Virus record (IMG/VR): IMGVR_UViG_3300005529_000001
Location: 62,001-126,000 of that record
Reading direction: 5' to 3' (one strand)
DNA: 64,000 bases
The notes under the pieces were generated by a model. The model ran no database searches. It saw only the letters and a program-made list of their open reading frames with translations, and was not told where the DNA came from. Of the stretch, positions 8,149 through 63,959 are shown in pieces (the stretch's first letter is position 1; every line of letters starts with the position of its first letter). A program made the translations under genes and the position numbers.

Positions 8149-8403
8149 TCACTCGTCGTCGTACTTCACGTACTCCGCCTTGATGGCGACGGTGTAGATG
8201 ATGTGCCCCTTCGGGGCGCCGGTGCCCTTCTGGTCGATGTCCTTGCGCATGGTGAACTCGCACGTGGTGGGCGTTCCGGGGGCGGTCAGGTCAACCACCG
8301 CGTTCGGGTGGGCGTCCAGCGAGTCAATGAACGGGTCCATCGGCGCCGCGAGCTCGCACGCGTCGATCATCGCCTGGGCGACCTGTATCAGGTTGGTGTC
8401 CAT
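8149..8403 (-). CDS. hypothetical protein
   Basis: cassette promoter + ORF. Confidence 0.75.
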   Translation of the reverse strand: MDTNLIQVAQAMIDACELAAPMDPFIDSLDAHPNAVVDLTAPGTPTTCEFTMRKDIDQKGTGAPKGHIIYTVAIKAEYVKYDDE

Positions 8404-8435
8404 GGTGTCAGTCTACCACGATCTGCGCGGCGCTT

Positions 8436-8690
8436 TCACCAAGTGCGGCGCTTCGTGTAAACAGCAAAGACGCCCTCCGTTGTGACGGACGCCCACACCC
8501 GCATCCAACCGTTGGCTTCCATGTCGGAGTCAGACTGTGACGACGTGCCGCTCGGGTAGGGCAACACCCGGGTGACGAAGGTGTCGCCACCGCGCTTTTG
8601 CGCAGCGCTAACGGGTGGGTCGATGTCGACCGAGCGTCCCGTTGTGCGGTCGAGAATGACGGTGTCTTCGGGAGAGAATCTGTTGTCCAT
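8436..8690 (-). CDS. hypothetical protein
   Basis: cassette promoter + ORF. Confidence 0.75.
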   Translation of the reverse strand: MDNRFSPEDTVILDRTTGRSVDIDPPVSAAQKRGGDTFVTRVLPYPSGTSSQSDSDMEANGWMRVWASVTTEGVFAVYTKRRTW

Positions 8691-8726
8691 GACAAGACTC
8701 TACCAGGATCTGCGCGATCCTTTCAC
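8691..8726 (-). promoter_or_regulatory. type example of the cassette promoter
   Basis: GTGAAA(8726-8721)-GGATCGCGCAGATCCTGG-TAGAGT(8702-8697)-CTTGTC-ATG; the TGA of the upstream gene lies within the -35 box. Confidence 0.9.
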
Positions 8727-8923
8727 CCGTCGACGTAGGCGGTGCCCTCGACCACGCGGGCGTTGATGCCCTTCTGCTTCAGGAAACGCTGGTACGCTTC
8801 GTCTTCCTGTTCGGCGTCGTAGCCGTCGGCGCCCGTGAAGATGCGGTCGTCCCGGGTCATCATCCCCAGCTCGGGGTGCCCGATGGTCGCATCGTCATAC
8901 TCGAGCTCGTACTTCTTGGTCAC
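8723..8923 (-). CDS. acidic hypothetical protein
   Basis: GTGA-coupled; stop in next -35 box. Confidence 0.7.
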   Translation of the reverse strand: MTKKYELEYDDATIGHPELGMMTRDDRIFTGADGYDAEQEDEAYQRFLKQKGINARVVEGTAYVDG

Positions 8924-9141
8924 GCTGGCACCGCCTTTCCGGGGATGAGGGTCCGCGTTGCGCGCTTCTGAGAGACGAGACCGCTGGCGAAGCCGTCAGC
9001 GAACTCGAACGAGGTGTTGCAGAGCCGGTAGTGCGCCTTCCGCAGCGCCAGCTTGAAACCGGGCTTGCGACAGGGGACCACCGCGACCCGCCCAGCGTGC
9101 GTGCCCTCGAGGACCTCGATCACGTTCCATGTTATGTCCAT
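8920..9141 (-). CDS. hypothetical protein
   Basis: cassette promoter + ORF. Confidence 0.7.
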   Translation of the reverse strand: MDITWNVIEVLEGTHAGRVAVVPCRKPGFKLALRKAHYRLCNTSFEFADGFASGLVSQKRATRTLIPGKAVPA

Positions 9142-9655: not shown

Positions 9656-9850
9656 TCAGGGCGTGCCGAAGTCGGAGACGGCCTTCTCCATCACCGCCTT
9701 CCTGATCTGGACCTCCTTCAACGCCTTCTCCAGTGCATCCTCGAGCATCTGGAGCTGGTACAGCCCATCGTGGAGTGACCCAGCGATCGGGGACATGGTG
9801 TTGTTGATCGCTTCCTCGACCTCAGCAGTGAAACTCGGTCCGGGCATCAC
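9656..9850 (-). CDS. hypothetical coiled-coil protein
   Basis: promoter at 9862-9897 with GAGGTG SD. Confidence 0.65.
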   Translation of the reverse strand: MMPGPSFTAEVEEAINNTMSPIAGSLHDGLYQLQMLEDALEKALKEVQIRKAVMEKAVSDFGTP

Positions 9851-9893
9851 CTCACCTCCATGGTCATGTTATACCAGGATCTGCGCGATCCTT

Positions 9894-10199
9894 TCACACG
9901 TCGAGGCCGCAGTACTGCGTCACCAACACCTTGGTGCCGAAGACTTGGACCTTTGGCTCCTCCGAGAAGGAGCGACCTGGGCCACCGTAGTGACGGTCCC
10001 AGCCGGTGAGGACGTGTGCCAGGTCGTAGTCGTCGTCCTGTGCGCGGGGACCGATCGTGCGGAGCAGCTCCGCCTCGCACTCTGCCTTGTCCAGCACCAC
10101 GTACTTGGTGCACGAGGCCTCGCTGGGGTCACGGAAGGAGATGCCGCTGCGGAGGACGGTGAAGCCGGTGTCGATGGTGACGTGCTCGTTGGTTGCCAT
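9894..10199 (-). CDS. hypothetical protein
   Basis: cassette promoter + ORF. Confidence 0.75.
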   Translation of the reverse strand: MATNEHVTIDTGFTVLRSGISFRDPSEASCTKYVVLDKAECEAELLRTIGPRAQDDDYDLAHVLTGWDRHYGGPGRSFSEEPKVQVFGTKVLVTQYCGLDV

Positions 10200-10231
10200 G
10201 AGACCAGTCTACACTGATCTGCGCTTGGCTT

Positions 10232-10945
10232 TCACCGGTCCGAGCAGATTTCACAAGGAATGGGCATTCCCGTGGTGTCGGTGGGACAGAAGCCACCCGT
10301 GTTGGGGACCGACGACCCCGTCACCGAAACAACCCCGTTGGTGCACTTGACATCGAAGTAGCTGGAACAAGCGCTGCCCAGTCCCAAGCAGATGTTGACA
10401 TCGGAGCCGCTGGCAGCGAGACCCGTCGCGGTCGGGGTTGCGCTGCTGTAACGTTGGTAGTAGTCGATGCGGACCTCGCCCCCACAGGTGCCGTTGACGA
10501 CGAACTTGCCCGGGACGGTGTCGCCGAACGCGATGTCCATGCCCGGGATGTCGAAGGTGTACGAGTAAGTGTTGGGACCCGCCGCAGCTTCGGGCGCGGC
10601 GTCCGCGGCAACCACGACGTCAGCAGTCACCACGTCAGGGTCAGACCCAGCGTCGGGGTCACTGGGAGCGTCGGTCCCAGCGTCGACAGTGGAACCTGCC
10701 TCGACGTCCTGCTTGGTGAGCTTGGGGCTGTCGGTGAGCCCCGCGTCGGGGACGACCGCTGAGGCTTCGGGGACGGGCGTCGCGTCGGGAACGGGCGGGT
10801 CACCTGCGTCATCTCCAGCGAACCCAGCTTCACCCATCGGCTGGGCGATCGGCTTGTTGAGGGGCGGGACGTTCTCAGGGCCCGAGAAAGCGCTGCCGCC
10901 GCAGGCGACGAGGAAGAGAGCCGTGATGGCGACTGTGTGTCTCAT
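10232..10945 (-). CDS. lipoprotein with D-A-G low-complexity linker and Cys-rich C-terminal domain
   Basis: lipobox LVAC-GG; repeated DAG/DAA; cassette promoter. Confidence 0.75.
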   Translation of the reverse strand: MRHTVAITALFLVACGGSAFSGPENVPPLNKPIAQPMGEAGFAGDDAGDPPVPDATPVPEASAVVPDAGLTDSPKLTKQDVEAGSTVDAGTDAPSDPDAGSDPDVVTADVVVAADAAPEAAAGPNTYSYTFDIPGMDIAFGDTVPGKFVVNGTCGGEVRIDYYQRYSSATPTATGLAASGSDVNICLGLGSACSSYFDVKCTNGVVSVTGSSVPNTGGFCPTDTTGMPIPCEICSDR

Positions 10946-38767: not shown

Positions 38768-39646
38768 CTACTTCTTCTTGGGTCGGTTGGGATTCTTGTA
38801 GTCGTACCCGGCGGCAAAGTACACGTTACGGGCACCCACGTTGCTTAGCGCTTTGCGGAGATTGACGAAGGTGAAACCAGTGTCAACGTTGTCATCAATG
38901 ACCAACACGTTCTTGCCACGAAGCGAACCAGCTTCGTCGGTAGTGTCATGGAGGTGAAGGAACTTGCGCCATGAGTGCGGCACGCCTTTCATCTCAGGCT
39001 CTACGTTTGGATTCTTTTTCCAGATAGCAAGCTGTTTGTCGAGAAGCTTTTGTGTCTTGATGACCTCAGCAGGATTCGTTTCAGCGACGTAAGCATCCCA
39101 TGCCTCTGGGTCGACCTCCATGTCTCCCGCGCTTCTCTTACGAGTCGCACCGAGCAGGACCTGTGCAAGCGGCTCGCCATGTTCGGCATGCAGGAGATCA
39201 GCAACATGTTCTGATAACTCCCACGCCATGGTGCTGTTCGACGAGACAGGGATGATAACATCGATGTCATCGTCATTGAAACGTCGAGCAATGCGGGCGG
39301 CGATCCTCCTGTACGCAATGGCCTGGTCTTGCGGCCTTGTCTTCAGGACAACGTCGCCTGCTTGGACAGACGTCTGCTTGAGCAGCTTCATCACGTCACG
39401 CGGAGTGAACTTGTGTTTCTGTGCCAGGTCGGCGAGAGAAGACTCGTAACCAGGACCCGACCCAAAAGCTTTCCTGGGCATGAAGGCAACGAAATAGTCA
39501 GTGCCCTTCACTTCCCTATTACTGCTTCCCTGGGGCAGCTCGCTGGGAGACACCATGCTCAAGGTCAATGCATCAGATGGCAACGTCAGAGAGCCATCGA
39601 ACGCCTCGAGCAGGATCAGTCGCAGGTCACCCAGAGTCAGCTGCAC
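38768..39646 (-). CDS. type I phosphoribosyltransferase-domain protein
   Basis: PRPP loop VLVIDDNVDTGFT; IIPVSS motif. Confidence 0.8.
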   Translation of the reverse strand: MQLTLGDLRLILLEAFDGSLTLPSDALTLSMVSPSELPQGSSNREVKGTDYFVAFMPRKAFGSGPGYESSLADLAQKHKFTPRDVMKLLKQTSVQAGDVVLKTRPQDQAIAYRRIAARIARRFNDDDIDVIIPVSSNSTMAWELSEHVADLLHAEHGEPLAQVLLGATRKRSAGDMEVDPEAWDAYVAETNPAEVIKTQKLLDKQLAIWKKNPNVEPEMKGVPHSWRKFLHLHDTTDEAGSLRGKNVLVIDDNVDTGFTFVNLRKALSNVGARNVYFAAGYDYKNPNRPKKK

Positions 39647-48187: not shown

Positions 48188-48283
48188 ACATGACATCTCA
48201 ATGGGGTACCGTAAATCACGAATTCCATGACAGGAGTTGGGTCCGAACCCCTACCTGTCACCCTCTATTAGACGGAGAGGTGC

Positions 48284-51200
48284 ATGATCAAGTGCCAGAT
48301 GTGCCGCGGCTCTGGGTGGTACCAGTCGTCGCCAGGCAACAGGAGCCAGTGTCCGTATTGCAACGGACGTGGTAGCATCAACGAGAACTCGCCCAGCGAG
48401 CAACGTAGAGCTCGTGACTTCGAGTCTTTCTATGGCGATGACCTCAATCGAGCTGGTTATAGCACGAAAGAGATCAGCCGCATCTTGGAGGAGAAGTCGG
48501 GCCAGATCGTACAAGCGCTGAAGACGATGCCTGTGAAGGGCCCTATCGCTTCGTCTCAGGTCGGTCGCCCGCCCCAACTTCGTCCCACACGAGTGCCATA
48601 TAAGCTTGACTCTGACGAGAAAGAGCGGCTCAGGCAACTTCGTGATCCTTCGCAACAGACTTTGCCTCCGACGCAGGCAACATCAACTGATGTAAAGCGC
48701 CAACAAACAGAAGTAGTTTCCAGTCACACAACGGCGAAAGCCACAGAAAAGAGAGCAGACATCATGGGAGAAGACGACATTCGCGGCCGACGGGCGCAGG
48801 ACATGATCCTAGCCCCGAACGAGTACGCATACATCAGCGACGAGACCAAGGGCGAAGTCAACGTCTTCGTCGGCCCCAACAAGCAGTCGCTTGCGGGCAC
48901 TGACCAGATGGTCAAGTTCGACACCAAGACGAAGCGGTTCTCGCCGACGTCACGTGAACAGGGCAACCAGCTGTTCCAGACGGCTCCCGAGGGCTGGTAC
49001 GTCGTCCTGAAGAACCCGGCCGAGGGCGACAAGCACCCGGCTGGCAGCGGCAAGCTATCGACCCCCACCCTTCGGGTCGGTAAGAAGGTTAACATCTCCG
49101 GTCCCTGTTCCTTTGCTCTCTGGCCCGGTCAGATGGCCAAGGTCGTCCAGGGCCACTCGCTGAAGTCGAACGAGTACCTGCTGTGCCGGGTCTACGATGA
49201 AGAGGCTGCACGGGCCAACTGGTCCAAAGCAGTCATCAAGACGCAGGGCGAGGCAACGACGGGTGAGGGCGCAGATGCAACTCCGAAGAACCAGCGTCCC
49301 GCCAAGGTGGTGAAGGCTGGCAGCGAGATCCCGTCCGAGGGCGAGCTCACGATGGGCAAGCTCTTCGTGGTCCGTGGCACTGAGGTCTCCTTCTACATCC
49401 CGCCGACGGGCATCGAGGTCGTCGCTGATGGTGAGAAGTATGTCCGCGAGGCCGTCTCTCTGGAACGCCTCGAGTACTGCTTGCTCCTCGACCAGAACGG
49501 CAACAAGCGATACGTCATCGGTCCCGACGTCGTGTTCCCGCGACCGACCGAGAAGTTCGTCGAGGCGCCGATCAAGTCCAACCCGGACAAGGTCAAGGCC
49601 AAGAAGTTCCGTGCCCAGGAGCTGACTCCAACGAGCGGCATCCACATCCGCGTCATCTCGGATTACACCGAGAAAGACGGCACCAAGCGCACCGCGGGTG
49701 AAGAGCTCTTCATCACGGGCAACGAGCAGCCGGTGTACTTCCCCCGTGAGGAGCACGCCATCATCAAGTACGGCGAGCAGGATGTCCACTACGGAATCGC
49801 GATCCCGCCGGGCGAGGCTCGCTACGTGCTGAACAGGCTCACCGGCGAGGCGAGCCTGGTCGACGGTCCGAAGATCTTCCTTCCCGATCCCCGGACGCAA
49901 GTCATCCTCCAGCGCGCCATCCCGCTCGACATGTGCGCTCTCCTTTACCCCGGCAACGAGGAGGCTCTCGCGATCAACGCGGCTCGCCTCGGCGTCGAGG
50001 ACCAGGACTACATGGGTGCTGGTGGAGCAAACGCCGCGTTCCTCAACAGCACTTACGAGCGTAACGCTGGCGAGAACGAGGCCTATGCTGCGGTCGCTGC
50101 AGCGGCTCCGAATGACACCGCTCGCGGTCGCATCCTGATCAAGTCGGCGAGCAAGTCCCTTCCGGGCGACGCCTTCGATCGGAAGGCGAAGTTCACTGCG
50201 CCGCGCTCCGTCATCCTCAACACCAAGTACGACGGCGCCATCGGCATCAACCTCTGGACCGGCTACGCCATGCTGCTCGTCAGCAAGGGCGGCAAGCGCC
50301 GGGTAATCCAGGGACCGGGCACCTTCATGTTCGAGTACGACGAGAACCCGCAGCTCATCTCGCTGTCAACGGGCAAGCCGAAGTCGACCGACAAGCTCTG
50401 CAAGACGTACTACTTGCAGGTCACCAACAACATGGTCAGCGACATCGTCGAGGTCGAGACCAGGGACTTCTGCCGGCTCACTGTCAAGCTGAGCTACCGA
50501 GTCAACTTCGAAGGCAACTCCGAGAAGTGGTTCGCGGTTGACAACTACGTCAAGTTCCTCTGTGACGCGATGCGGTCACGCATCCGCTCCGCGGTGCAGA
50601 AGCTGGGCATCGAGGAGTTCTACGGCAACCACACGCCAATCCTGCGTGACATCATCCTGGGTGCCAAGCCCGCCGAGGGTGGCGAGCGCACAGGCACCAT
50701 GTTTGCCGAGAACGGCATGCGAATCTACGATGCTGAGGTCCTTGGCATCCAGATGCAAAACCAGGACGTCGAGAAGCTCCTGGTCGCTGCACAGCGGTCC
50801 GTCATCCAGAACACCCTCGTCCTTGCTGAAGAGCGGCGCAAGCTGGACTTCGTCAAGGAGACCGAGGAGCTCAAGCGGGAGACAGCTTCCGCTCAGGCCG
50901 AGACGACCCGGGCAACCCTCGAGTTGCAGCGAGTCAACGCCCAGCGCAAGCTGGAGCTTGACCTGGCCCTGATCGCCAACAGCGCCAAGCAGCAGAGCGA
51001 GCAGCTTGCTGTCGAAGCAGCAACGACGGCAGCCCGAGCCACTCTCAACCTGGCCAACGAGAAGGCCGCGGCGGAAGTTGCGGCAGTCGAGCTGGAGACC
51101 GCTGAAGCCCGTCAGGCTTCGGAACGAACGCACCAGGCCGCCCTACAGGCCCTCGAGCTCGCCAAGCTCACGGCCCAGACAGAAGCGACCAAGGAGAAGG

Positions 51201-51436
51201 CAACCGCCATCAGCCCGCAGCTAGTCGCGGCGCTAGAAGCGGCGGGCAACAAGGAAGTGGCGATGAAGCTCGCTGAGTCCTTCAACGTGCTGGGCATCAT
51301 CGGCGGCGGCAAGAAGAGCGTCGCCGAGATCTTCAGTGAGCTGCTCAAGGGCACCGTGCTGGGCCCCCAGCTCGCCGCGGTGGTCAAGGGTGAGAAGAGC
51401 GAGTCGAACGGTTCGAGCAAGACGGCTCGAGCCTGA
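48284..51436 (+). CDS. major vault protein (MVP) homolog with N-terminal Zn-finger extension
   Basis: MVP-type repeats (LAPNEYAYISD..GEV..FVGP; RYVIGP; GIHIRVISDY..KDGTKRTAGEELFITG; YVLNRLTGE..LVDGP); shoulder domain LSTGKPK...SDIVEVETRDF..L.VKLSY..NF...F.V.NYV..LC.A..SRIR.AV...F.ENG; long Ala/Glu-rich cap helix; second possible start at 48764. Confidence 0.85.
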   Translation: MIKCQMCRGSGWYQSSPGNRSQCPYCNGRGSINENSPSEQRRARDFESFYGDDLNRAGYSTKEISRILEEKSGQIVQALKTMPVKGPIASSQVGRPPQLRPTRVPYKLDSDEKERLRQLRDPSQQTLPPTQATSTDVKRQQTEVVSSHTTAKATEKRADIMGEDDIRGRRAQDMILAPNEYAYISDETKGEVNVFVGPNKQSLAGTDQMVKFDTKTKRFSPTSREQGNQLFQTAPEGWYVVLKNPAEGDKHPAGSGKLSTPTLRVGKKVNISGPCSFALWPGQMAKVVQGHSLKSNEYLLCRVYDEEAARANWSKAVIKTQGEATTGEGADATPKNQRPAKVVKAGSEIPSEGELTMGKLFVVRGTEVSFYIPPTGIEVVADGEKYVREAVSLERLEYCLLLDQNGNKRYVIGPDVVFPRPTEKFVEAPIKSNPDKVKAKKFRAQELTPTSGIHIRVISDYTEKDGTKRTAGEELFITGNEQPVYFPREEHAIIKYGEQDVHYGIAIPPGEARYVLNRLTGEASLVDGPKIFLPDPRTQVILQRAIPLDMCALLYPGNEEALAINAARLGVEDQDYMGAGGANAAFLNSTYERNAGENEAYAAVAAAAPNDTARGRILIKSASKSLPGDAFDRKAKFTAPRSVILNTKYDGAIGINLWTGYAMLLVSKGGKRRVIQGPGTFMFEYDENPQLISLSTGKPKSTDKLCKTYYLQVTNNMVSDIVEVETRDFCRLTVKLSYRVNFEGNSEKWFAVDNYVKFLCDAMRSRIRSAVQKLGIEEFYGNHTPILRDIILGAKPAEGGERTGTMFAENGMRIYDAEVLGIQMQNQDVEKLLVAAQRSVIQNTLVLAEERRKLDFVKETEELKRETASAQAETTRATLELQRVNAQRKLELDLALIANSAKQQSEQLAVEAATTAARATLNLANEKAAAEVAAVELETAEARQASERTHQAALQALELAKLTAQTEATKEKATAISPQLVAALEAAGNKEVAMKLAESFNVLGIIGGGKKSVAEIFSELLKGTVLGPQLAAVVKGEKSESNGSSKTARA

Positions 51437-51452
51437 TCTAACCACAACAATG

Positions 51453-51486
51453 GAAGCCGCGGTCTCACGACAGGGACCGCGGCTTT
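51453..51486 (+). terminator. hairpin between the MVP and flotillin genes
   Basis: GAAGCCGCGGTCTC-ACGACA-GGGACCGCGGCTTT; short U tract, may be leaky. Confidence 0.65.
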
Positions 51487-51518
51487 CGCACATCTGAAAA
51501 AAGAAAGAGAGATCAACA

Positions 51519-53435
51519 ATGGATGTTTTCAGCTCACACCTCGGCCTCATCATTGGGGGCGTGGTCTTCCTGTTCGCGGTGTTGCTCCATCGCATGGTGC
51601 TACGCCTTTTCGGGATGGTCGTCATCCCCGAAGACGGCATCGGCATCGTCACAAAGAAGTTCGTGCTCTTCGGAACCAACAAGGTCCTGCCTGACGGAGC
51701 CGTCGTCGCTCTCCAGGGCGAAGCTGGCGTCCAGGCTGACACCCTCGCGCCGGGCGTTCACTTCGGTCTCTGGCCTTGGCAGTTCGACATCGCAGTCCAG
51801 AAGTTCGTCACCATCGCCCGAGGCAACCTGGGTGTTGTCGTCGCTCGGGACGGCAAGGCGATCAGCGGAGGTCGCATCTTGGGCCGCACCGTCGAGTGCG
51901 ACTCCTTCCAGAACGCCAGGCAGTTCCTGCAGTCAGGCGGCGAGCGCGGACCCCAGCTAGCGATCATCCCGCCCGGGACCTACCGCATCAACACCGGGCT
52001 CTTCACCATCCAGATGACTGACGTCACCGAGGTCCATGACAACATGGTCGGCGTCGTCACCACCAAGGAGGGCCAGGCTCTCGACACGGGTGCCATCGCG
52101 GGACCCGAGGTCCCCGATCACAACATGTACCAGGACCCGCAGAAGTTCCTGAACGGCGGTGGCCGCAAGGGTCTCCAGGAGCAGGTGATCCTGGCGGGAC
52201 GTTACTACATCAACCCGCTCTTCGCCACTGTCGAAGAGGTCGCGATGACAGAGGTCCCCATCGCCCAGGCAGGCGTCGTCATCGCCTTCGTCGGCAAGGA
52301 AGGCGTCGATGTCACAGGTGACTCGTTCAAGCACGGCAACCTGGTCAGCAAGGGCCAGCGTGGTGTCTGGGCCGACCCGCTCGATCCCGGTCGCTACCCG
52401 ATCAACCCCTACACCCACCGGGTCGAGAACGTGCCGACAGCAAACATCGTCCTGAACTGGGCGACGGGCAAGTCGGAAGCTCACAACCTCGACAAGAACC
52501 TCAGCACCATCACGGTGCGGTCCAACGACGGGTTCACGTTCAACCTGGATGTCTCGCAGATCATCCACATTCCCAGGGCCAGCGCCTCGAAGGTCATCGC
52601 CCGGTTCGGCAACGTCGCCAACCTGGTCACCCAGGTCCTGGAACCGACGATCGGCAACTACTTCCGCAACGCGGCACAGGGTTCCGACGTCATCAAGTTC
52701 CTCGGTGCCCGCCAGGAACGCCAGAACGATGCCAAGAAGTCGATCGGTGACGCGCTCAATGACTACGACGTTGTCGCGGTTGACACCCTGATCGGAGACA
52801 TCACTCCGCCGAAGGAGCTGATGAAGACCCTGACTGACCGCAAGATCGCTCAGGAAGAACAGGCAACGTTCCAGACCCAGCGCCAGGCGGAAGAGCAGCG
52901 CAAGGACCTCGAGCAGGCCCGAGCGACCGCAGCCACCCAGGCCAAGGTCGTCGATGCCGAGCGGAAGGTCGCCATCGCTGAGTTCGAGGCCCAACAGGCG
53001 GTGAAGAAGGCCGAAGGTGACTCTCGGTCGATGGTCATCAATGCCAGGGCCAGCGCCGAGATGGACGTCGTCAAGGCCGAGGCGGCAGCGAAGGTCAAGA
53101 CGGCGATCGCCGAAGCGGAAGCCAAGGCAACCGTCCTCAACGGTGATGCCCAAGGCAAGTCGATCGCCGCGGTTGGTACCGCAGAAGCCGCGGTCATCAA
53201 GGCCAAGGCGGACGCGGTCGACCAGACCAACTACGCTACGATCGAGGTCGCTCGGGCTCTCGCCAATGGCAAGCACCCGCTCGTTCCCCAGATCGTCGCA
53301 GGCGGCGGTGGCGAGGGCGGGGGCATGAACAACCTGACCAGCGTCCTGATGGCCAACCTCATCGACAGGGAGAGCCACCAGCCAAAGGTGAACGGCACTG
53401 CAACTCGCAAGCCCTCCGAGAAGTCGTCAGACTGA
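51519..53435 (+). CDS. SPFH/flotillin-family membrane protein
   Basis: N-terminal TM; repeated GVV...G.Q...L.PG.Y.IN units; SPFH core (ITVRSNDGF.F.LDVSQI...VLEP.IGNYFRN); AEA-rich coiled coil; LVP.I..GG tail. Confidence 0.9.
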   Translation: MDVFSSHLGLIIGGVVFLFAVLLHRMVLRLFGMVVIPEDGIGIVTKKFVLFGTNKVLPDGAVVALQGEAGVQADTLAPGVHFGLWPWQFDIAVQKFVTIARGNLGVVVARDGKAISGGRILGRTVECDSFQNARQFLQSGGERGPQLAIIPPGTYRINTGLFTIQMTDVTEVHDNMVGVVTTKEGQALDTGAIAGPEVPDHNMYQDPQKFLNGGGRKGLQEQVILAGRYYINPLFATVEEVAMTEVPIAQAGVVIAFVGKEGVDVTGDSFKHGNLVSKGQRGVWADPLDPGRYPINPYTHRVENVPTANIVLNWATGKSEAHNLDKNLSTITVRSNDGFTFNLDVSQIIHIPRASASKVIARFGNVANLVTQVLEPTIGNYFRNAAQGSDVIKFLGARQERQNDAKKSIGDALNDYDVVAVDTLIGDITPPKELMKTLTDRKIAQEEQATFQTQRQAEEQRKDLEQARATAATQAKVVDAERKVAIAEFEAQQAVKKAEGDSRSMVINARASAEMDVVKAEAAAKVKTAIAEAEAKATVLNGDAQGKSIAAVGTAEAAVIKAKADAVDQTNYATIEVARALANGKHPLVPQIVAGGGGEGGGMNNLTSVLMANLIDRESHQPKVNGTATRKPSEKSSD

Positions 53436-53505: not shown

Positions 53506-53907
53506 ATGGGCAAGCAACCAGACGAACGAGCGGTCCCCGACATCAAGCACCTGTGGCTGAAAGACGTGGTCGATCATGACTATGATGCCGCCTTCAGCTT
53601 CCTCTTCATCAGGGTCGGCAAGAAACGTGCGATAACGCTGGTTGACAAGCTTCACAAGGAAGCTGACGTCACCTGGATGCGAGCTAACGACATCCTACGT
53701 GCTTGCAACCTGCCCGCCCTGGGCATCAATGACCCAGGCACCCACCACAACATGGTGAAGACGATCCGGGGCAAGTCGCTAAGCCCGGTGCTGGTGGTTA
53801 CATTGAAGGACGGGACCAGCACCATCGCTGATGGTTACCACCGGGTCTCCTGGGCTTACCAGATCTCACCCTGGGTCATGGTCCCCGGGCGCTTGGTCAC
53901 CGAGTGA
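53506..53907 (+). CDS. ParB/Srx N-terminal-domain-like protein
   Basis: LSPVLVV...IADGYHRV motif. Confidence 0.65.
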   Translation: MGKQPDERAVPDIKHLWLKDVVDHDYDAAFSFLFIRVGKKRAITLVDKLHKEADVTWMRANDILRACNLPALGINDPGTHHNMVKTIRGKSLSPVLVVTLKDGTSTIADGYHRVSWAYQISPWVMVPGRLVTE

Positions 53908-53911
53908 CGGG

Positions 53912-54193
53912 ATGTCACGCGCTGCTGGCACCCGGTGTGGGGGACCCTGGACCGCCAACGTCAATGATGAACACCTCCAGTGGTATGATGAGTGGGTCGA
54001 GCCGGGACAGCTCAGGCGACAGCCCAAGCAAGACTCGATCGCGTTGGTCATCGGTCCCATGGATGACCAAGACAGGCACCAGCACGACAGGACGGTGCGG
54101 TGGTTGCTCCTGATGGACGACAGGCTCATCGCCAAGTCTTTGCAAGAAATCGGTGACTGGTGGCTGGTGCATCCCACCCCCTTTGAGGTTTAG
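53912..54193 (+). CDS. PG-family barrel protein (divergent)
   Basis: EPGQL...ALVIG...WLLL; start uncertain. Confidence 0.5.
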   Translation: MSRAAGTRCGGPWTANVNDEHLQWYDEWVEPGQLRRQPKQDSIALVIGPMDDQDRHQHDRTVRWLLLMDDRLIAKSLQEIGDWWLVHPTPFEV

Positions 54194-54202
54194 GATTTTC
54201 TC

Positions 54203-54451
54203 ATGTCAATATCGGGCGAAGAGTTCTTGTGGATTTACTTCACGATGTGGCCCGTCCTCTTCCTCATCGACGGGCTGTGGCACCGCTTCACTCACAGGAA
54301 GATGAGTGACGGAGACATCCTGATCCACTCGCTCTACATCTTCATCTGGCCCTTCGGCTTGCCCATGCTCGTGGTACTCAAGTGCTGGTGGGTGGGGCTT
54401 GACATGCTCGGGAACGGGTTAATCCGAGCCTGGCGTTGGATCGTCGGATGA
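54203..54451 (+). CDS. small membrane protein
   Basis: two hydrophobic segments with WP motif. Confidence 0.6.
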   Translation: MSISGEEFLWIYFTMWPVLFLIDGLWHRFTHRKMSDGDILIHSLYIFIWPFGLPMLVVLKCWWVGLDMLGNGLIRAWRWIVG

Positions 54452-54759
54452 CAGACCCGACGTGGTGGCGTTTCAACCAGGAGCCTGACGGAAAGGTAGA
54501 TCCGGAGGCTTTCCACTGGACCCACGTCAAGCCCGGTGATGTCGTCCAATCACGTGGGACAAACGCATTCCGCCAGCGTGATTTCGTCGGGCGGACGATG
54601 GACACAAAGGTTCTCACCCTTGCTCGCAGCCCCGTCCTAGTCCTGTCCAGACACGAGGGCATCCCGGGCGAAGAGTCTCCCGGTGATACAGTCACTTTCA
54701 CTTGCTTGTCACGCCATGGGATCATCATCGTTCTCCAATCGGTGAAGAGAAAAACGTGA
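54448..54759 (+). CDS. PG-family barrel protein (divergent)
   Basis: KPGDVV...VLVLS. Confidence 0.55.
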   Translation: MTDPTWWRFNQEPDGKVDPEAFHWTHVKPGDVVQSRGTNAFRQRDFVGRTMDTKVLTLARSPVLVLSRHEGIPGEESPGDTVTFTCLSRHGIIIVLQSVKRKT

Positions 54760-55010
54760 CACGCACCAAACGGAAAAGGCTCTTTTTAGAGAAAGACCCA
54801 CCCAAGCCAGGTGACCTGGTCTTGCTGAAGCGTGGCCATGCTTTCCGGACCCTCCCTCAAGGCAAGGGAGGACTTGTCAGGTACAGCCGCGAAGATGAAG
54901 TTGCGTTGCTCATCGGGTTTGATCATTTCCTAGAAGATGCGTTGTTGCTGTCGTTGGGTAGCTACACAATGGGCTGGTATGACGTTAGAGAGTACACGAT
55001 CGTTCCTTGA
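54756..55010 (+). CDS. SH3b-like paralog
   Basis: KPGDLV...ALLIG...MGWY. Confidence 0.65.
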   Translation: MTRTKRKRLFLEKDPPKPGDLVLLKRGHAFRTLPQGKGGLVRYSREDEVALLIGFDHFLEDALLLSLGSYTMGWYDVREYTIVP

Positions 55011-55759
55011 AAGGTGATCGAAAACTACGCGTGGTGGCGAAGTATATTGAGAGGGTGACGCCTAAATTTCTCGTCTACACCATGTATTGTGGTGAGTTTG
55101 ACTTCAATCACTGCGTGAGAGCCATTGCCTCACAACGTGACGTGGAGGTCAAGCACGAGGTCGTCAGCTACCTTCCAGAAATGGAAGCACACAACGTCGT
55201 CTACCAGGCGTTCAACGCCGCGGGACCCGAGTGGTACCGTGCTAAGATCGACGCTGACGTAGAGCTGCTTGATGATCGCGTCCTGCAACGGGCGGCTCAA
55301 CGGTTCAGGGAGTTGCCCCTCGCCCACGGGATCAGCCCGTTGGTTCACGATTATCTCTCTGATAGCGAGATCCATGCAGGCGTGAATTTCTACACTCACC
55401 ATGTTGGGTTTGATGTCCAAAAAGACAACTTGCGATGCGATCGTGGCATGGTCTTTAGGGAGTCTGAGCACTGGCTTGGCGGTGACATGCCCGTTGTTGG
55501 CAAGCACATGCATCATTGCAACGAGCTGGCAGCATTCAGGTACGGGTTCCATCGTGGTATGAAGGGGCAGATCTCGATCCGCGACAAGGTTAAGGTTGCT
55601 TCAGAGAAACACGTAGCTGACACACGTAATCACCTTCGTGCTTTAGCATTGAAGGGATTTGATGTGGGACTTTCAGCAAATCGCAACATCGGTCACAACT
55701 ACGGTGACAGTGACCTCATGGACGCATTCAAACGAGCAACCGCACAAGGATCTCAATGA
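55007..55759 (+). CDS. glycosyltransferase-like protein (GT-A)
   Basis: C...IASQ, AKIDADV (DxD); start uncertain. Confidence 0.5.
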   Translation: MKGDRKLRVVAKYIERVTPKFLVYTMYCGEFDFNHCVRAIASQRDVEVKHEVVSYLPEMEAHNVVYQAFNAAGPEWYRAKIDADVELLDDRVLQRAAQRFRELPLAHGISPLVHDYLSDSEIHAGVNFYTHHVGFDVQKDNLRCDRGMVFRESEHWLGGDMPVVGKHMHHCNELAAFRYGFHRGMKGQISIRDKVKVASEKHVADTRNHLRALALKGFDVGLSANRNIGHNYGDSDLMDAFKRATAQGSQ

Positions 55760-56622
55760 GATACGTTGACATTATCAAGATGCGTGCCGCTTGCAAGTCA
55801 GCCGCTGAGACGTTGCAATACGTGGGTGGGTTGGTCAGGCCAGGCATCACCACTGCGGAGATCGACAGGCTTGTTCACAATGATACCGTCAGACGTGGTG
55901 GCAAGCCCGCGCCCTTGAACTACAGGGGATTCCCCAAATCATGCTGCACGTCGATAAACGACGTCGTCTGCCACGGCATCCCAGACAAGACGGTGCTAAA
56001 AGAAGGTGACATCGTCAACATTGACGTGACGACGATCCTCGATGGACACTTCGGTGACACCAACGCCACGTTCTACGTGGGACAGGTGAAGCCCGAAGTC
56101 GAGCGGTTCGTGTCACGTGCAGCGATGGCGATGTGGGCAGGCATCCACGTCGTCCGCCCGGGCATCAAACTAGGAATGGTGGGCCAAGCGATCGAGGCTT
56201 ATGCCAAGAGTGAAGGGTACAGTGTGGTCAGGGATTTCGGCGGTCACGGCATTGGCCGGATCTTCCACGCCAAGCCACATGTCCATCACTTTGCCAATGA
56301 TGAGGGTCCGGTCCTCAAGGTCGGCGACACCTTCACCATCGAACCCATGATCAACATGGGTGGGCCCGACGTGGTCATCGACAAAGCTGACAGCTGGACA
56401 GCGCGGACTGCTGATGGCTCGCTCAGTGCGCAGTTCGAAAACACCGTCCTTGTAACAGATGATGGTGTTGAAGTGTTGACAATGGCAGAGAGCCCAGACG
56501 TCCAGTGTCACGTTTGTGGCACTTGGAGCTGGCTCGAGGGCAGCGATCCCGTCAAGTGGGGCTGGACAGAGAAAGAGGGTAGGTGGACGTGCAAGCAGTG
56601 CAGAACCAATGAGTCACCTTGA
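55756..56622 (+). CDS. map: methionine aminopeptidase type I with C-terminal Zn-ribbon tail
   Basis: FPKSCCTSINDVVCHGIP, DIVNIDVT, GDT, GHGIG..FH, TIEPMI, SAQFE; tail CHVC...CKQC. Confidence 0.92.
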   Translation: MRYVDIIKMRAACKSAAETLQYVGGLVRPGITTAEIDRLVHNDTVRRGGKPAPLNYRGFPKSCCTSINDVVCHGIPDKTVLKEGDIVNIDVTTILDGHFGDTNATFYVGQVKPEVERFVSRAAMAMWAGIHVVRPGIKLGMVGQAIEAYAKSEGYSVVRDFGGHGIGRIFHAKPHVHHFANDEGPVLKVGDTFTIEPMINMGGPDVVIDKADSWTARTADGSLSAQFENTVLVTDDGVEVLTMAESPDVQCHVCGTWSWLEGSDPVKWGWTEKEGRWTCKQCRTNESP

Positions 56623-56848: not shown

Positions 56849-57303
56849 GCCAGCTCGAGCGAGTGACGACTCGAGACGTGTGGTGCCCGTCTGAGGAGTA
56901 CCCGTCGCCCGGCGTCTTTGTCAAGCACATCGCGGACGACAAGTCCTTGGGCATGATCGTTGGTCGCGAGGGAACTGACCTTCTAGTCCTGTGGTCAAAG
57001 CAACCGTTTCACATCAAGATTGAGACACGAGACATCAAGCCAACGTCGCGGAAGCTTCGCATCAAGTTCAGTGTTGTTCCTGACGTCATGTCGCCAGAGT
57101 TCCAACAACTAGCGCAGCACGAGGTGCATGAGGATTTCGCCCCGGGTGAGCTGACGCCGAGCGGGATCAACTGGTACCAACGTCACGGTGGACGGGTAAC
57201 ACTTCACCAGGACGGACACGCTGAGGTTGACCGAACCGTGAGTGACCTCGGAGAGTACGATCTTAAAAGAGCTCAAGTGGAATATGAAACTCGACGTCGT
57301 TGA
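56845..57303 (+). CDS. SH3-like 'VLWS' protein fused to a gp23-like capsid fragment (middle region)
   Basis: SPGVFV...LGMIVG...VLWS..P then IKIETRDIKPTSRKLRIKFS. Confidence 0.65.
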   Translation: MSQLERVTTRDVWCPSEEYPSPGVFVKHIADDKSLGMIVGREGTDLLVLWSKQPFHIKIETRDIKPTSRKLRIKFSVVPDVMSPEFQQLAQHEVHEDFAPGELTPSGINWYQRHGGRVTLHQDGHAEVDRTVSDLGEYDLKRAQVEYETRRR

Positions 57304-57978: not shown

Positions 57979-58318
57979 AAAAGACGTCAACAGGGGTCAC
58001 CTGGTCAGGACTATCTGTGCGGGTGATCCCAACACTCCCCTGTTGCCGGGCGACATGGTCAGGCACTGGCAAGACTCCCAGAGCTCGGGCACCGTCATCT
58101 CAGTCTCAGACGATGGACGGGTGAATGGCGACCTTGAAGCGATGGTGCTCTGGACGAAGCTGCCCTTCAACGGACAATACCCTCCCTCGCCAGTGATGCC
58201 CACGGACACCAACCCGTGTGCAGAAGTCACGTTGATGACCGACATGTTCACAGCTGGCATCATCAGCAAGAAGACGATGTACGAACACCTCGGACTGGAT
58301 CCAGATGAGCAACCTTAA
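57962..58318 (+). CDS. SH3-like 'VLW' protein with an RNR-like TNPCAE motif in its tail
   Basis: LPGDMV...GTVIS...VLWT..P then TNPCAEVTL. Confidence 0.6.
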   Translation: MKLVREKDVNRGHLVRTICAGDPNTPLLPGDMVRHWQDSQSSGTVISVSDDGRVNGDLEAMVLWTKLPFNGQYPPSPVMPTDTNPCAEVTLMTDMFTAGIISKKTMYEHLGLDPDEQP

Positions 58319-58712
58319 AACGTATGAAGGCCAGCTAGCGCGTGATATCGTGAGCATTGACGCTCGATCCTTTCAAGTCAGCGAACACACATTAGCAATC
58401 TGTCTTTCTCCGGGCGATTGGGTCAAGCACCGCTTTTACGAACGAGCTCCGGGTTTAGGCATGTTGGTTGCTGTCGGCAAGAAACGTGATTCCTTGATGA
58501 AAGAGATCGATTTTATCACGGTCCTGTGGTCAGTTGAACCCACAAACCCGTTCAATGCGTTGTCACCCAGCCTCGTGTACGCTCCATACATCCCGCTTGT
58601 AATAACGCCAACAGTGATTGAAACCGAGTCACCCGTCGCCGCTTATCAATACCATCGTAAGTTGGTAAACAAGTCATATTTTAGCAGCATCAAAGTCAAG
58701 GACATCAAGTGA
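58305..58712 (+). CDS. SH3-like 'VLWS' protein fused to a gp23-like capsid C-terminal fragment
   Basis: SPGDWV...LGMLVA...VLWS..P then VYAPYIPL..TP...KLVNKSYFSSIKVKDI. Confidence 0.75.
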   Translation: MSNLKTYEGQLARDIVSIDARSFQVSEHTLAICLSPGDWVKHRFYERAPGLGMLVAVGKKRDSLMKEIDFITVLWSVEPTNPFNALSPSLVYAPYIPLVITPTVIETESPVAAYQYHRKLVNKSYFSSIKVKDIK

Positions 58713-59317
58713 GCGCTCTCAAAACATACGGTCGCTTGTTCAATGACGAGGATGGGAAATATTACCCCTGGGACTTCCGGCTCACCAACGGGTGTGGCAA
58801 TCCCAACTGTGATGTGTTAGCTCCTGGCGAGTGGGTAGAACACAGATCCTGGGGTGGCTTCGGGATGATCATCGCCATTGATGATCAGCAAATCACCATC
58901 CTGTGGAGCGAAGAGCCCCACACCCCAACATTCCCCAGCATTGCGGGCCTGACTCACCGCGTCAACATGCAACAGGTGGCTCAAGCTCTGATTGCAGTCC
59001 AGCCGATGTCACTGCCCGCAGGTGCCATCTTCTACATGGACTACACGTATGGAGGTTACAAGCTCGACCCCAGGTGCAACGAGGGTCCCCTGTGGCGTAG
59101 GATGTTCTGGCGAGCATGCCTGTACACGTCTACACGGATCCAGTCGTGGTGGTCGTCTTTCTCATCCTGGTCACGCTCCTTGTTGTCCAAGCCTACCATA
59201 CCAATCGAGCCCGATCAGTTCGAAAAGGAACTGAAGAACATCATCACAAGATGCGGGAGACGGACGACGGCCAGCAAGCCAAAGGCCCTGCCCACAAAGA
59301 CGCCTGAGGGAGGTTGA
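58709..59317 (+). CDS. SH3-like 'ILWS' protein fused to a gp23-like capsid fragment (Gol region)
   Basis: APGEWV...FGMIIA...ILWS..P then LIAVQPMSLPAGAIFYMDYTYG. Confidence 0.75.
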   Translation: MSALKTYGRLFNDEDGKYYPWDFRLTNGCGNPNCDVLAPGEWVEHRSWGGFGMIIAIDDQQITILWSEEPHTPTFPSIAGLTHRVNMQQVAQALIAVQPMSLPAGAIFYMDYTYGGYKLDPRCNEGPLWRRMFWRACLYTSTRIQSWWSSFSSWSRSLLSKPTIPIEPDQFEKELKNIITRCGRRTTASKPKALPTKTPEGG

Positions 59318-61960: not shown

Positions 61961-62291
61961 CGTCAGTCTCCGTAGTTGCGATCATTGCGTTCCACTCTTC
62001 GTCCTTGCCTTCTACGATGCGGATGGCTTCTTCGTGTCGCCGTCGTCGTTCTTCGCGTGCGTCTCTCCGACGTTGCAAGATGCCCTTTCGCCATTTGGAG
62101 AAATTCTCTTGGACCCAAATGATCGGAAGCACGATAGCTGCAACAACCATAAAGAGAGGCCAGGCTATCGCGATCAACGGGTAAGGAAGTCGATCGCTGT
62201 CATTTGTGTCGTCAAAGAACGCTGCCACAGCGCAGGCAGGATAGCCTAGCACGTAGACAATCAGGAACAACCACCAATACCAGTGCATCAC
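61920..62291 (-). CDS. membrane protein
   Basis: two TM segments with WP motif; charged tail. Confidence 0.65.
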   Translation of the reverse strand: MMHWYWWLFLIVYVLGYPACAVAAFFDDTNDSDRLPYPLIAIAWPLFMVVAAIVLPIIWVQENFSKWRKGILQRRRDAREERRRRHEEAIRIVEGKDEEWNAMIATTETDDGDQTHEARTAVS

Positions 62292-63185: not shown

Positions 63186-63959
63186 ATGAGTCGTCTGATT
63201 GTCATTGGTGATTTGCACGGGTGTCTGGCAGAAGCAGAGGAGCTGCTCCAGAAGTGTGACGCCCGTCCCGAGGACCACGTCCTCTTTTTGGGTGACCTCG
63301 TTGACCGTGGGCCCGACAGCGCTGGTTGCGTTGACCTCGCCATGCGCATCGAAGCGCGGCAAAACAAGCGTGCATGCATCCTCGGCAATCACGAAGAAAA
63401 ACACCTTTTCTATGACGACATCGAGCTACGCAAGGGCCACGTGCGTGTTGATGTCGAGACACATATCGAGACCCGCAAGCAGCTGAAGCGTCACCATTAC
63501 GACTACTTCAGGGCGATCCCGAAGTTCTTGCGTTTCCCAGAACACAACCTCGTCGCGGTCCATGCTGGTGTCTACCCTGGTCGCCCGATCGAGAAACAGA
63601 CCGATAGGCACCTGCTCCACATCCAGAGCATCAGGCCGCCCGAGGAGAAATCGATGTGGCCCAGCCGCATCCCACCCAACGAGACGGACTGGCGGTTCTG
63701 GCACCGCTACTGGGACGGGCCCGAACGCATCATCTTCGGTCACAGCGTCCTCAACAAGCCGCTGGTCACCGACAAGGTCATCGGCATCGATGGCGGCGCT
63801 TGTTTCGGCTTGGAGCTGTGGGCGTACGTTTTCCCTGATAATCAGCTCGTCAGCGTCAAGGGCCGTGGCTCACACGATCACAAGGACCTTGACAGGCGCG
63901 GCAACTCAAACAAGAAGCTCTACATCATTGATGAGGACCACGGCGTGGGCACGTACTGA
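63186..63959 (+). CDS. calcineurin-like metallophosphoesterase (ApaH/PrpE/Ser-Thr phosphatase family)
   Basis: GDLHG, GDLVDRG, GNHE, VHAG, FGH, GID.G motifs; promoter TACAAT-N7-ATG. Confidence 0.9.
   Translation: MSRLIVIGDLHGCLAEAEELLQKCDARPEDHVLFLGDLVDRGPDSAGCVDLAMRIEARQNKRACILGNHEEKHLFYDDIELRKGHVRVDVETHIETRKQLKRHHYDYFRAIPKFLRFPEHNLVAVHAGVYPGRPIEKQTDRHLLHIQSIRPPEEKSMWPSRIPPNETDWRFWHRYWDGPERIIFGHSVLNKPLVTDKVIGIDGGACFGLELWAYVFPDNQLVSVKGRGSHDHKDLDRRGNSNKKLYIIDEDHGVGTY

Follow-up and report, generated by a model that had tools for sequence, protein, structure and literature searches.

A major vault protein homologue followed by a flotillin-type gene in a huge soil phage

What use might a bacterial virus have for a vault? 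The question is raised by IMGVR_UViG_3300005529_000001, an IMG/VR viral contig of 369,475 bp, in which a gene for a full-length major vault protein (MVP) homologue is directly followed by a gene for a membrane SPFH protein of the flotillin type. We analysed a stretch of 64,000 nucleotides (positions 62,001 to 126,000 of the record, to which it is 100% identical), hereafter called the window. An initial annotation, made from the letters and their translations, had suggested that the two proteins form a soluble and a membrane-bound cage that cooperate. We are as good as certain of both protein identities, and full-length MVP is kept under strong purifying selection, with signs of high expression, in a large clade of huge phages. 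The flotillin is a far less constant companion.

The two genes occupy one strand of the window:

48284..51436, + strand, MVP homologue open reading frame (ORF 1), long form, 1050 amino acids (aa), ATG start
51519..53435, + strand, SPFH/YqiK-type flotillin ORF (ORF 2), 638 aa, ATG start

Positions, strand, sizes and the 82-nt spacer are as first annotated, and the two ORFs are indeed the longest in the window, the third longest encoding only 417 aa. The reported preference for C or G at third codon positions is also real: the G+C content at these positions (GC3) is 0.80 for MVP and 0.83 for the flotillin, whereas the genes around them have a median of 0.64 and none exceeds 0.76.

Is ORF 1 truly an MVP? 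In Pfam searches, MVP_shoulder (PF11978) matched aa 715-824 with an E value of 6.8e-29 (100.7 bits, cut-off 25; profile positions 2-116 of 118) and Vault_3 matched aa 670-705 at 1.8e-7 (31.6 bits, cut-off 28.8). Of the profile matches that the initial annotation expected, the shoulder was thus found, while the Vault repeat (4.7e-4, 20.5 bits) fell under its cut-off of 27; relatives of ORF 1 carry PF01505 and PF17795. When a profile of 41 family members was compared with 177,635 PDB sequences, it retrieved MVPs only (best 9e-33), in a colinear alignment that is weak across most of the repeat array and becomes strong at the last repeat, remaining so over the shoulder and the cap helix. An AlphaFold2 model of aa 161-1050 (ORF residue = model residue + 160), computed from an alignment from which the GenBank phage rows were left out, contains beta-repeats, an alpha/beta shoulder and a single continuous 146-residue helix in the canonical order, as the translation had been taken to imply. 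The 12 best PDB matches to this model in a Foldseek search are full-length human, rat and rabbit vault chains (7e-29 to 2.5e-23, over about 800-950 aligned columns), followed by murine MVP R1-R7 (1.6e-8) and then by flotillin, prohibitin, HflK/C and stomatin. The parts of the protein are as follows, with model confidence given as the AlphaFold2 per-residue score (pLDDT):

48764..50425, + strand, MVP beta-repeat body, aa 161-714 (model strands, Foldseek matches to R1-R7, Vault_3, and weak colinear stretches of the hidden Markov model (HMM) alignment to the human repeats)
50000..50224, + strand, conserved MVP segment, aa 573-647 (not in eukaryotic MVP; pLDDT 26-39)
50426..50755, + strand, MVP shoulder, SPFH-like, aa 715-824 (PF11978; pLDDT 80-92)
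50762..51199, + strand, MVP cap helix of ~146 residues, aa 827-972 (DSSP helix 667-812 of the 890-aa model; aligns with the human cap helix)
51200..51433, + strand, conserved C-terminal region, candidate cap-ring, aa 973-1050 (invariant P, A, G and T columns; low model confidence)

Over the 41 sequences, 56 of 222 columns in the repeats and 29 of 122 in the shoulder are invariant, which indicates strong purifying selection on MVP. The segment at aa 573-647 is conserved in the family, as seen for example in the invariant F, R, P, R, L and G columns around KFTAPRS-LNTKYDG; it may need the oligomer or a bound partner to become ordered. In all, ORF 1 has every architectural feature of an MVP that can be tested in silico.

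Several observations weigh against reading this protein as the subunit of a vault. The monomer model is mediocre, with a mean pLDDT of 64; model residues 190-410 and 490-800 lie mostly at 70-92, and ORF aa 161-350 (~190 residues) and aa 573-647 fall below 50. The PDB holds no prokaryotic or phage MVP structure, the vaults there being all eukaryotic. No vault RNA or Y RNA-like family was matched by Rfam anywhere in the window at gathering thresholds, no TROVE or PARP domain was present in the 20 larger window ORFs scanned, a set that does not cover all small ORFs, and PADLOC returned no match for MVP, the flotillin or the downstream ORF. The partners of eukaryotic vaults, TEP1/TROVE, PARP4 and vault RNA, are not universal even among eukaryotes.

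How closely does the phage protein resemble eukaryotic MVP? It has the domain order of the vaults of known structure (PDB 4V60, 9BW5, 9R86, 9Z4W), a similar size, a cap helix of ~150 residues, a C-terminal region and a conserved basic G-[KR]-P-K loop. However, identity is only ~16-18%, an extra conserved segment of ~75 aa precedes the last repeat of the phage protein, the window's lineage adds a zinc-ribbon extension of 160 aa, the NAD+ pocket is for the most part not conserved, and TEP1, PARP4 and vault RNA were not detected in the window scans; unlike the eukaryotic particle, a phage cage is a prediction. The basic loop is found at

50372..50383, + strand, G697-K698-P699-K700 loop (HMM alignment to the human keyhole loop G503-R504-P505-K506)

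Human MVP binds NAD+, ADP and ADP-ribose between shoulder domains via this basic 'keyhole loop' (PMC12280208; bioRxiv 10.64898/2026.05.01.722283). All 41 sequences have G, P and K700, and 34 of them have K698, whereas human pocket residues R507, P508, H509, R511, L517, D521, F522, W545, P565 and K573 (as listed in PMC12280208) are not conserved; thus a basic lumenal loop is present and the whole human pocket is not. These data bear on the possibility that an abundant MVP cage acts as a nucleotide sponge, sequestering NAD+, ADP-ribose or a related nucleotide from NAD-depleting or nucleotide-signalling defences. Such a role would fit the ligands bound at the human shoulder (PMC12280208; bioRxiv 10.64898/2026.05.01.722283), a G-K-P-K loop that varies little or not at all among phage and bacterial members of the family, and a high codon bias, which is consistent with stoichiometric action. 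Yet nine of thirteen human pocket residues have not been conserved (R504 aligns to Lys in 34/41) and no PADLOC or anti-defence family was matched, and we consider an anti-defence sponge quite improbable.

Where does the phage MVP begin? Four features bear on this question:

48274..48280, + strand, Shine-Dalgarno-like GGAGAGG, 3 nt before ATG 48284 (read from the sequence)
48284..48763, + strand, lineage-specific N-terminal extension, aa 1-160 (zinc ribbon and ~120-aa polar linker)
48290..48388, + strand, DnaJ-type double CxxCxGxG zinc ribbon, aa 3-35 (weak Pfam matches to DnaJ_CXXCXGXG and Anti-TRAP)
48764..48766, + strand, invariant internal Met161 (start of the short 890-aa form)

Public annotation of the same gene (P0001, 100% identity) gives the 890-aa form. 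Met161 is the start in most relatives, is invariant in the alignment and lies downstream of an AAGAGAG-like purine tract that resembles the tract before the flotillin start. The GGAGAGG motif before ATG 48284, in turn, supports the upstream start and the 1050-aa form. The extension is kept open in six relatives (P0002-P0006 and P0014, 64-80% identity), which conserve its Cys/Gly motifs, and it has diverged, the window and the L003 locus sharing ~39% identity; the linker after the zinc ribbon is polar and basic, with a net charge of +6. On sequence grounds, we conclude that the predicted long form is real in the window's sub-lineage, and it is possible that a short form from Met161 is made in addition. 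Elsewhere, among 1.84 billion representatives, relatives of the extension amounted to two weak motif-level matches. A stand-alone DnaJ-type zinc-finger ORF near MVP in another relative (L089) was considered as a relative of the extension and set aside, as the match is at the level of the motif. The N-termini of MVP come together at the waist of eukaryotic vaults and face inwards, towards the lumen. The ribbon and its basic linker would therefore be lumenal and, by analogy, the extension could hold cargo inside the particle.

How widespread are such proteins? A protein search returned >2291 homologues, the best 120 of which are >=49% identical, and GTDB representative genomes contain 388 MVP loci (<=50% identity) in many phyla, some on contigs >1 Mb. 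In IMG/VR, at least 239 stretches encode MVP relatives, a lower bound obtained with two peptide patterns; many of these lie on contigs of 100-480 kb, and the Joint Genome Institute (JGI) already labels several relatives 'major vault protein'. Among GenBank phage records, tblastn found homologues only in three 'uncultured phage' genomes of 462-735 kb (40-43% identity), of which two are possible duplicate deposits, both being 735,411 bp long with identical match coordinates; LR756501-LR756504 have been called megaphages (PMC9723777). In a FastTree phylogeny, the MVPs of the metagenomic relatives form a clade with 99% support and three members confirmed in IMG/VR; of the 40 copies from bacterial genomes included in the tree, 39 lie outside it. 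The contigs of this clade share the window's dense layout of small ORFs. The AT-rich megaphage MVPs form a long branch on the bacterial side. The sole bacterial-genome MVP inside the phage clade, from a 69-kb contig of a Lentisphaeria metagenome-assembled genome (L012; JBAZJM010000003.1), may belong to a mis-binned phage.

Bacterial MVPs (Myxococcota, Cytophagales, Sericytochromatia and others; bioRxiv 10.1101/872010) are likewise full-length, of the same length and 46-50% identical to the phage protein, and are encoded by solitary genes; they differ in forming a separate clade and in having no flotillin neighbour, at the loci examined, and no N-terminal extension. Two MVPs of gut Caudoviricetes, ctOa11 and ct2Ri15, have been described purely in silico, with no conserved neighbour reported (bioRxiv 10.1101/2023.11.10.566534). 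Compared by description only, these too are phage-encoded, full-length and located outside the structural module. However, they are ~811-aa proteins of smaller gut phages with Bacillota-type hosts, whereas the protein described here comes from a ~369-kb soil phage, belongs to a large clade, and has a zinc-ribbon extension and a downstream flotillin. The scale of the distinct huge-phage MVP clade and the N-terminal fusion of a zinc ribbon to MVP both appear to be new.

Could the element be something other than a phage, such as a host chromosome fragment, a megaplasmid or another giant element, in which case the gene pair would be ordinary bacterial cargo? No capsid, portal or terminase gene was found within the 64-kb window, which counts against a virus and means that the viral assignment rests on the IMG/VR entry and the relatives. 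A megablast search of 40000-64000 against GenBank phages gave no match. MVP homologues are widespread in bacterial chromosomes (the 388 loci above, some on contigs >1 Mb), vault-like proteins have been noted in Borgs as well (PMC12660748), and near 26 kb the GC content drops abruptly, from about 0.64 to about 0.55. Set against this are the 369-kb IMG/VR entry itself, the presence of homologues in megaphage records, and the make-up of the window. It holds about 109 ORFs, by crude ORF picking, which are mostly orphans of 80-300 aa, and nearly all of the ~20 scanned lack Pfam families; a few PHROG-only families and a gp23-propeptide-like protein are present, and no tRNA genes or housekeeping genes were found in the window. 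Moreover, its MVP nests within a clade of like-organised metagenomic contigs, three of them in IMG/VR. The viral context, on which the initial annotation had relied, is therefore upheld; we hold it to be highly probable, and a non-viral element to be very improbable.

What is the second protein? The membrane SPFH/flotillin assignment of ORF 2 stands, being borne out by a match to Band_7 (PF01145; 3.1e-24, 86.4 bits, cut-off 23.6) together with an N-terminal hydrophobic anchor. ORF 2 also matches PHROG_200 (1.7e-20) and is 51-65% identical to proteins of Ralstonia, Steroidobacteraceae and Terracidiphilus that are named YqiK or SPFH, and its family profile matches Flotillin-2 residues 205-402 (2.4e-4). 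Its parts are

51519..51629, + strand, N-terminal hydrophobic membrane anchor, aa 1-37 (19-aa Kyte-Doolittle windows >1.6 from aa 1-19; model helices 2-30)
51819..52454, + strand, three tandem beta-rich repeats of ~72 aa, aa 101-312, between anchor and SPFH core (self-alignment)
52347..52892, + strand, SPFH/Band_7 domain, aa 277-458 (PF01145)
52812..53267, + strand, long C-terminal helices/coiled coil, aa 432-583 (model helices 432-499, 503-566 and 569-583)

MVP has no hydrophobic window >1.6 except a single borderline one at aa 241 (1.67). The anchor, the Band_7 domain and the long C-terminal helices are shared with YqiK-type flotillins, HflK/C, QmcA, flotillin-1/2 and prohibitin; unlike those proteins, the window flotillin is phage-borne and belongs to a single clade. 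NCBIfam gave only low-complexity TolA- and DivIVA-like matches, attributable to the coiled coil. The repeats recur clearly in self-alignment (B vs C, z = 19.3; B vs D, z = 8.4; C vs D, z = 4.7), are the best-modelled part of the protein (pLDDT ~70-80) and, to judge from near-full-length alignments, are apparently shared with a bacterial subfamily; the repeat-extended flotillin architecture appears to be new. No NfeD-type partner was found in the window or at two bacterial flotillin loci inspected. One homologue, in Ralstonia solanacearum (P0203, 51% identity; contig L171), lies amid small orphan ORFs, a CagX-like (type IV secretion) gene and an amidase, surroundings that suggest a mobile element rather than core chromosome.

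SPFH proteins are not rare in huge phages. A survey of 7,187 genomes found 420 of them and proposed a role in host-membrane management (bioRxiv 10.64898/2026.10.24.761521). That survey links them to PspA and transporters and makes no mention of vaults or MVP, whereas the neighbour here is MVP. As to whether such pairs had been characterised, which the initial annotation could not say, phage MVPs (in silico) and huge-phage SPFH proteins are already known, each separately, and the pair itself is not.

Are MVP and the flotillin a unit? Four genomes besides the window have the two genes in the same order, ~80-95 nt apart (~140 nt in L096):

L003/L006, 72-kb contig, MVP-flotillin pair, MVP 78% identical
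L004/L005, 345.6-kb forest-soil contig, MVP-flotillin pair, MVP 66% identical
P0007 contig, MVP-flotillin pair, MVP 69% identical
L096, MVP-flotillin pair, MVP 73% identical

Four further genomes are presumably paired too, as equally sized records (53,977; 32,984; 18,626; 17,736 bp) appear in both match lists. A single capture would fit the tree, in which all MVP-linked flotillins belong to one clade of 25 sequences (100% support). The tandem arrangement appears to be new but is narrow, being limited to about 8 related genomes.

Beyond these genomes, the survey of MVP-flotillin synteny suggested in the initial annotation speaks against an obligate coupling. Among sister phages of the same MVP clade, no flotillin lies within 6-10 kb of MVP in L008 (309 kb), L089 (163 kb), L090 (313 kb) or 8 of 11 close IMG/VR loci (L093-L095, L097-L101); nor does one lie beside MVP in the 462-735 kb megaphages or within 8 kb of MVP at any of 80 bacterial loci. 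Since the flotillin is absent beside MVP in most relatives, the coupling is weak. Conversely, megaphage LR756502.1 (642 kb) encodes at 343856-345340 a flotillin that is 58% identical over aa 19-512 and has no MVP match, which indicates that huge phages acquire and pass on the two genes separately. On the MVP tree, phages with and without the flotillin are intermingled, implying repeated loss or, less likely, repeated gain of the flotillin. The flotillin seems to be an optional extra and not an obligate partner.

What takes its place? In flotillin-free sisters, an orphan of ~240 aa with no Pfam match directly follows MVP (L090:8716-9480, L093-L095, L097-L100), in up to eight loci and at a median of ~55 nt downstream; tblastn re-detected it in this position in four. 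The slot after MVP is therefore variable but occupied. In two paired genomes, the flotillin is followed by a 425-aa protein (L003:15603-16883, L004:14805-16082; 61% mutual identity), an AAA ATPase by Pfam in L004; this gene has no counterpart in the window, where 53506-55759 contains small ORFs. Bacterial MVPs have no universal neighbour, the best family being present at 11 of 80 loci and lineage-specific.

Is there a sign of joint expression? The spacer contains

51452..51487, + strand, 15-bp G+C-rich hairpin, followed by TTTCGCACATCTG and the flotillin ribosome-binding region

The hairpin has a folding free energy of -35.3 kcal/mol (z = -7.0), a stability reached by 0 of 200 shuffles. Hairpins of differing stem sequence occupy the equivalent position in L003, L004 and L096, and GCTTTCGCACATCT is a flanking or following motif common to three of the four hairpin loci. 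A consensus scan of the spacer found no canonical promoter or terminator, and no enrichment of either; the hairpin lacks a U-tract, a point that tells against a regulatory interpretation. The likeliest role for the hairpin would be that of an attenuator or an mRNA-stabilising 3′ structure that sets the ratio of MVP to flotillin. This conserved MVP-hairpin-flotillin arrangement of the sub-lineage appears to be new.

As for the level of expression, MVP stands out in GC3 at the window and at five of six related phage loci, with genomic GC of 43-62%: its value exceeds the interquartile range of the neighbouring genes and is 0.13-0.21 higher than their median. Flotillin GC3 is likewise raised where the gene is present. 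The MVP excess is absent in both very AT-rich megaphages. The first 26 kb of the window are equally high in GC3, and composition could therefore explain the bias, which counts against high expression. Recent horizontal transfer is a less likely cause, because the excess recurs in diverged phages of different GC. This recurrence across diverged lineages makes codon selection for high MVP expression the better reading.

If the coupling is so weak, why are the genes adjacent at all? They may be two unrelated cargo genes, MVP acting in the cytoplasm and the flotillin in membrane stress, whose adjacency is historical and reflects one insertion into a variable slot. In favour of this, the slot after MVP holds a flotillin (~8 genomes), the ~240-aa orphan (up to 8) or other small ORFs, megaphage LR756502 has the flotillin without MVP, and huge-phage SPFH genes abound in other contexts, for example near PspA (bioRxiv 10.64898/2026.10.24.761521); the 0/80 bacterial loci with a flotillin within 8 kb and the lack of a universal neighbour of bacterial MVPs point the same way. 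However, gene order, spacing and hairpin have been kept while the MVPs diverged to 65-80% identity and the flanking genes turned over, and both genes have the highest GC3 in their neighbourhood. We rate historical adjacency as a strong contender that falls just short of even odds.

At the other extreme, the MVP cage could dock on, or co-assemble with, a flotillin dome that forms a short 'membrane half-vault', the two making up a phage-built compartment. The conserved tandem arrangement with its shared regulatory spacer and the three beta-repeats of the flotillin are compatible with this. So are the closest PDB structures to the flotillin model, which are full-length MVPs (1.2e-5) and MVP R1-R7 (8e-3), with prohibitin and flotillin structures ranked behind, and a weak alignment that joins the 'STGKPK' loop of MVP to an 'ATGKSE' loop of the flotillin. 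However, this model is of low quality (pLDDT 58), and the partner is lacking in most MVP-bearing phages and at all bacterial loci examined. A specific homology between flotillin and MVP beyond the shared SPFH superfamily finds no support in the profile-profile comparison, which gave a probability of 3.8% and is not significant. The flotillin as a 'membrane-anchored mini-vault subunit' is thus a lead, suggested by modelling, and not a finding. The cooperation put forward in the initial annotation is not supported, with adjacency in only about 8 related genomes and one more megaphage having a flotillin without MVP; physical cooperation between the two proteins seems unlikely to us, and so does a two-cage system. 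The boldest version, that soil huge phages build vault organelles in which an MVP cage with lumenal zinc-ribbon adaptors and a 'half-vault' flotillin with MVP-like beta-repeats sequester host or phage molecules, is distinctly unlikely. If true, it would describe a new kind of phage-induced organelle and open a tractable prokaryotic window on the unsolved function of vaults.

How, then, might the two genes act? In the mechanism that we favour, they would be accessory genes of a huge (about 369 kb) soil phage. MVP, made in large amounts, would self-assemble as a homo-oligomer in the infected cell's cytoplasm and form vault-like cages, the assemblies expected of an MVP being 39-fold half-vaults or closed 78-mer barrels. 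Because every architectural element of a vault subunit has been kept, self-assembly into cages is the most likely behaviour of the protein, and we regard a vault-like cage as rather probable. In the sub-lineage, MVP would have gained an N-terminal zinc ribbon on a flexible basic linker, so that some or all subunits carry a lumenal tether, with long and short forms both made, from ATG 48284 and Met161. The YqiK-type flotillin would have entered the phage lineage once and would form an SPFH dome at the cytoplasmic membrane, on its inner face, with the three extra beta-repeats adding height. It would probably help to maintain the membrane through a long infection, as has been proposed for huge-phage SPFH and PspA proteins. 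MVP and flotillin are probably co-transcribed, and the conserved hairpin probably acts either by lowering the output of flotillin relative to MVP or by stabilising the message of MVP. What would the cage contain? Approximate vault and capsid dimensions indicate that the vault lumen is too small for a 369-kb genome. Shielding of the genome is therefore unlikely, and shielding of other nucleic acids or of proteins, which the initial annotation had also raised, would be pure conjecture.

What vaults do has been an unsettled question for about 40 years (PMC12280208; bioRxiv 10.64898/2026.05.01.722283). The maintenance of MVP in phages implies that selection can act on a role of the vault shell in surroundings as simple as one virus and one bacterial cell, with no TEP1, PARP4 or vault RNA detected. 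It also offers testable handles that eukaryotes lack, namely the zinc-ribbon extension (a possible cargo adaptor), the G-K-P-K loop and the optional flotillin. The value is limited in that phage MVPs and huge-phage SPFH proteins were reported before, the hosts are uncultivated and the role of the particle rests on inference.

A different neighbourhood surrounds MVP in a distant phage clade (~40% identity; loci L122, L125, L126, L128, L129, L136, L138, L139, L143, L150, L151, L156, L163, L165, L167 and L170), which has three conserved MVP neighbours, upstream and downstream. As an example, these lie in one locus at

L122:105-1439, 8164-9039 and 9679-10569, neighbours of the distant-clade MVP

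Upstream of MVP, at ~1.3 kb, is a 445-511-aa DUF2828+DUF7788 protein (Pfam 8e-17 and 6e-38); downstream come, at ~1.4 kb, a nucleotidyltransferase with a weak RlaP-like match (0.006) and, at ~2.9 kb, a phosphoesterase of the Metallophos family. To judge from these families, the neighbourhood could be of an RNA-repair or ribonucleoprotein-like kind. The three-gene arrangement is absent from the window's clade, and the DUF2828 protein has no PDB relative and no informative literature.

Other genes of the window include

58709-59317, + strand, 202-aa protein with a ~40-residue gp23-propeptide-like segment (Pfam 1.6e-6; PHROG_138 2.6e-7)
55756-56622, + strand, M24 metallopeptidase, methionine-aminopeptidase-like (5.6e-48; 75% identical to the L003 copy)
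63186-63959, + strand, calcineurin-like phosphoesterase, Metallophos (9e-18; also near MVP in L089)
38768-39646, - strand, phosphoribosyltransferase-domain (PRTase) protein

The gp23-like segment corresponds to the N-terminal (propeptide) part of the T4 major capsid protein gp23. Weaker matches of this type occur at 56905-57054 and 58311-58544, and similar small proteins are encoded a few kb downstream of MVP in L004/L005 and the P0007 contig; these proteins may be targeted to the prohead or processed. The M24, Metallophos and PRTase proteins are predicted accessory enzymes conserved among related phages. Finally, the GC content of the window drops near 26-30 kb, from about 0.62-0.67 (0.59-0.60 at 14-18 kb) to about 0.52-0.58, and ORF GC3 in 1-26000 reaches 0.84-0.94; the phage genome is compositionally heterogeneous.

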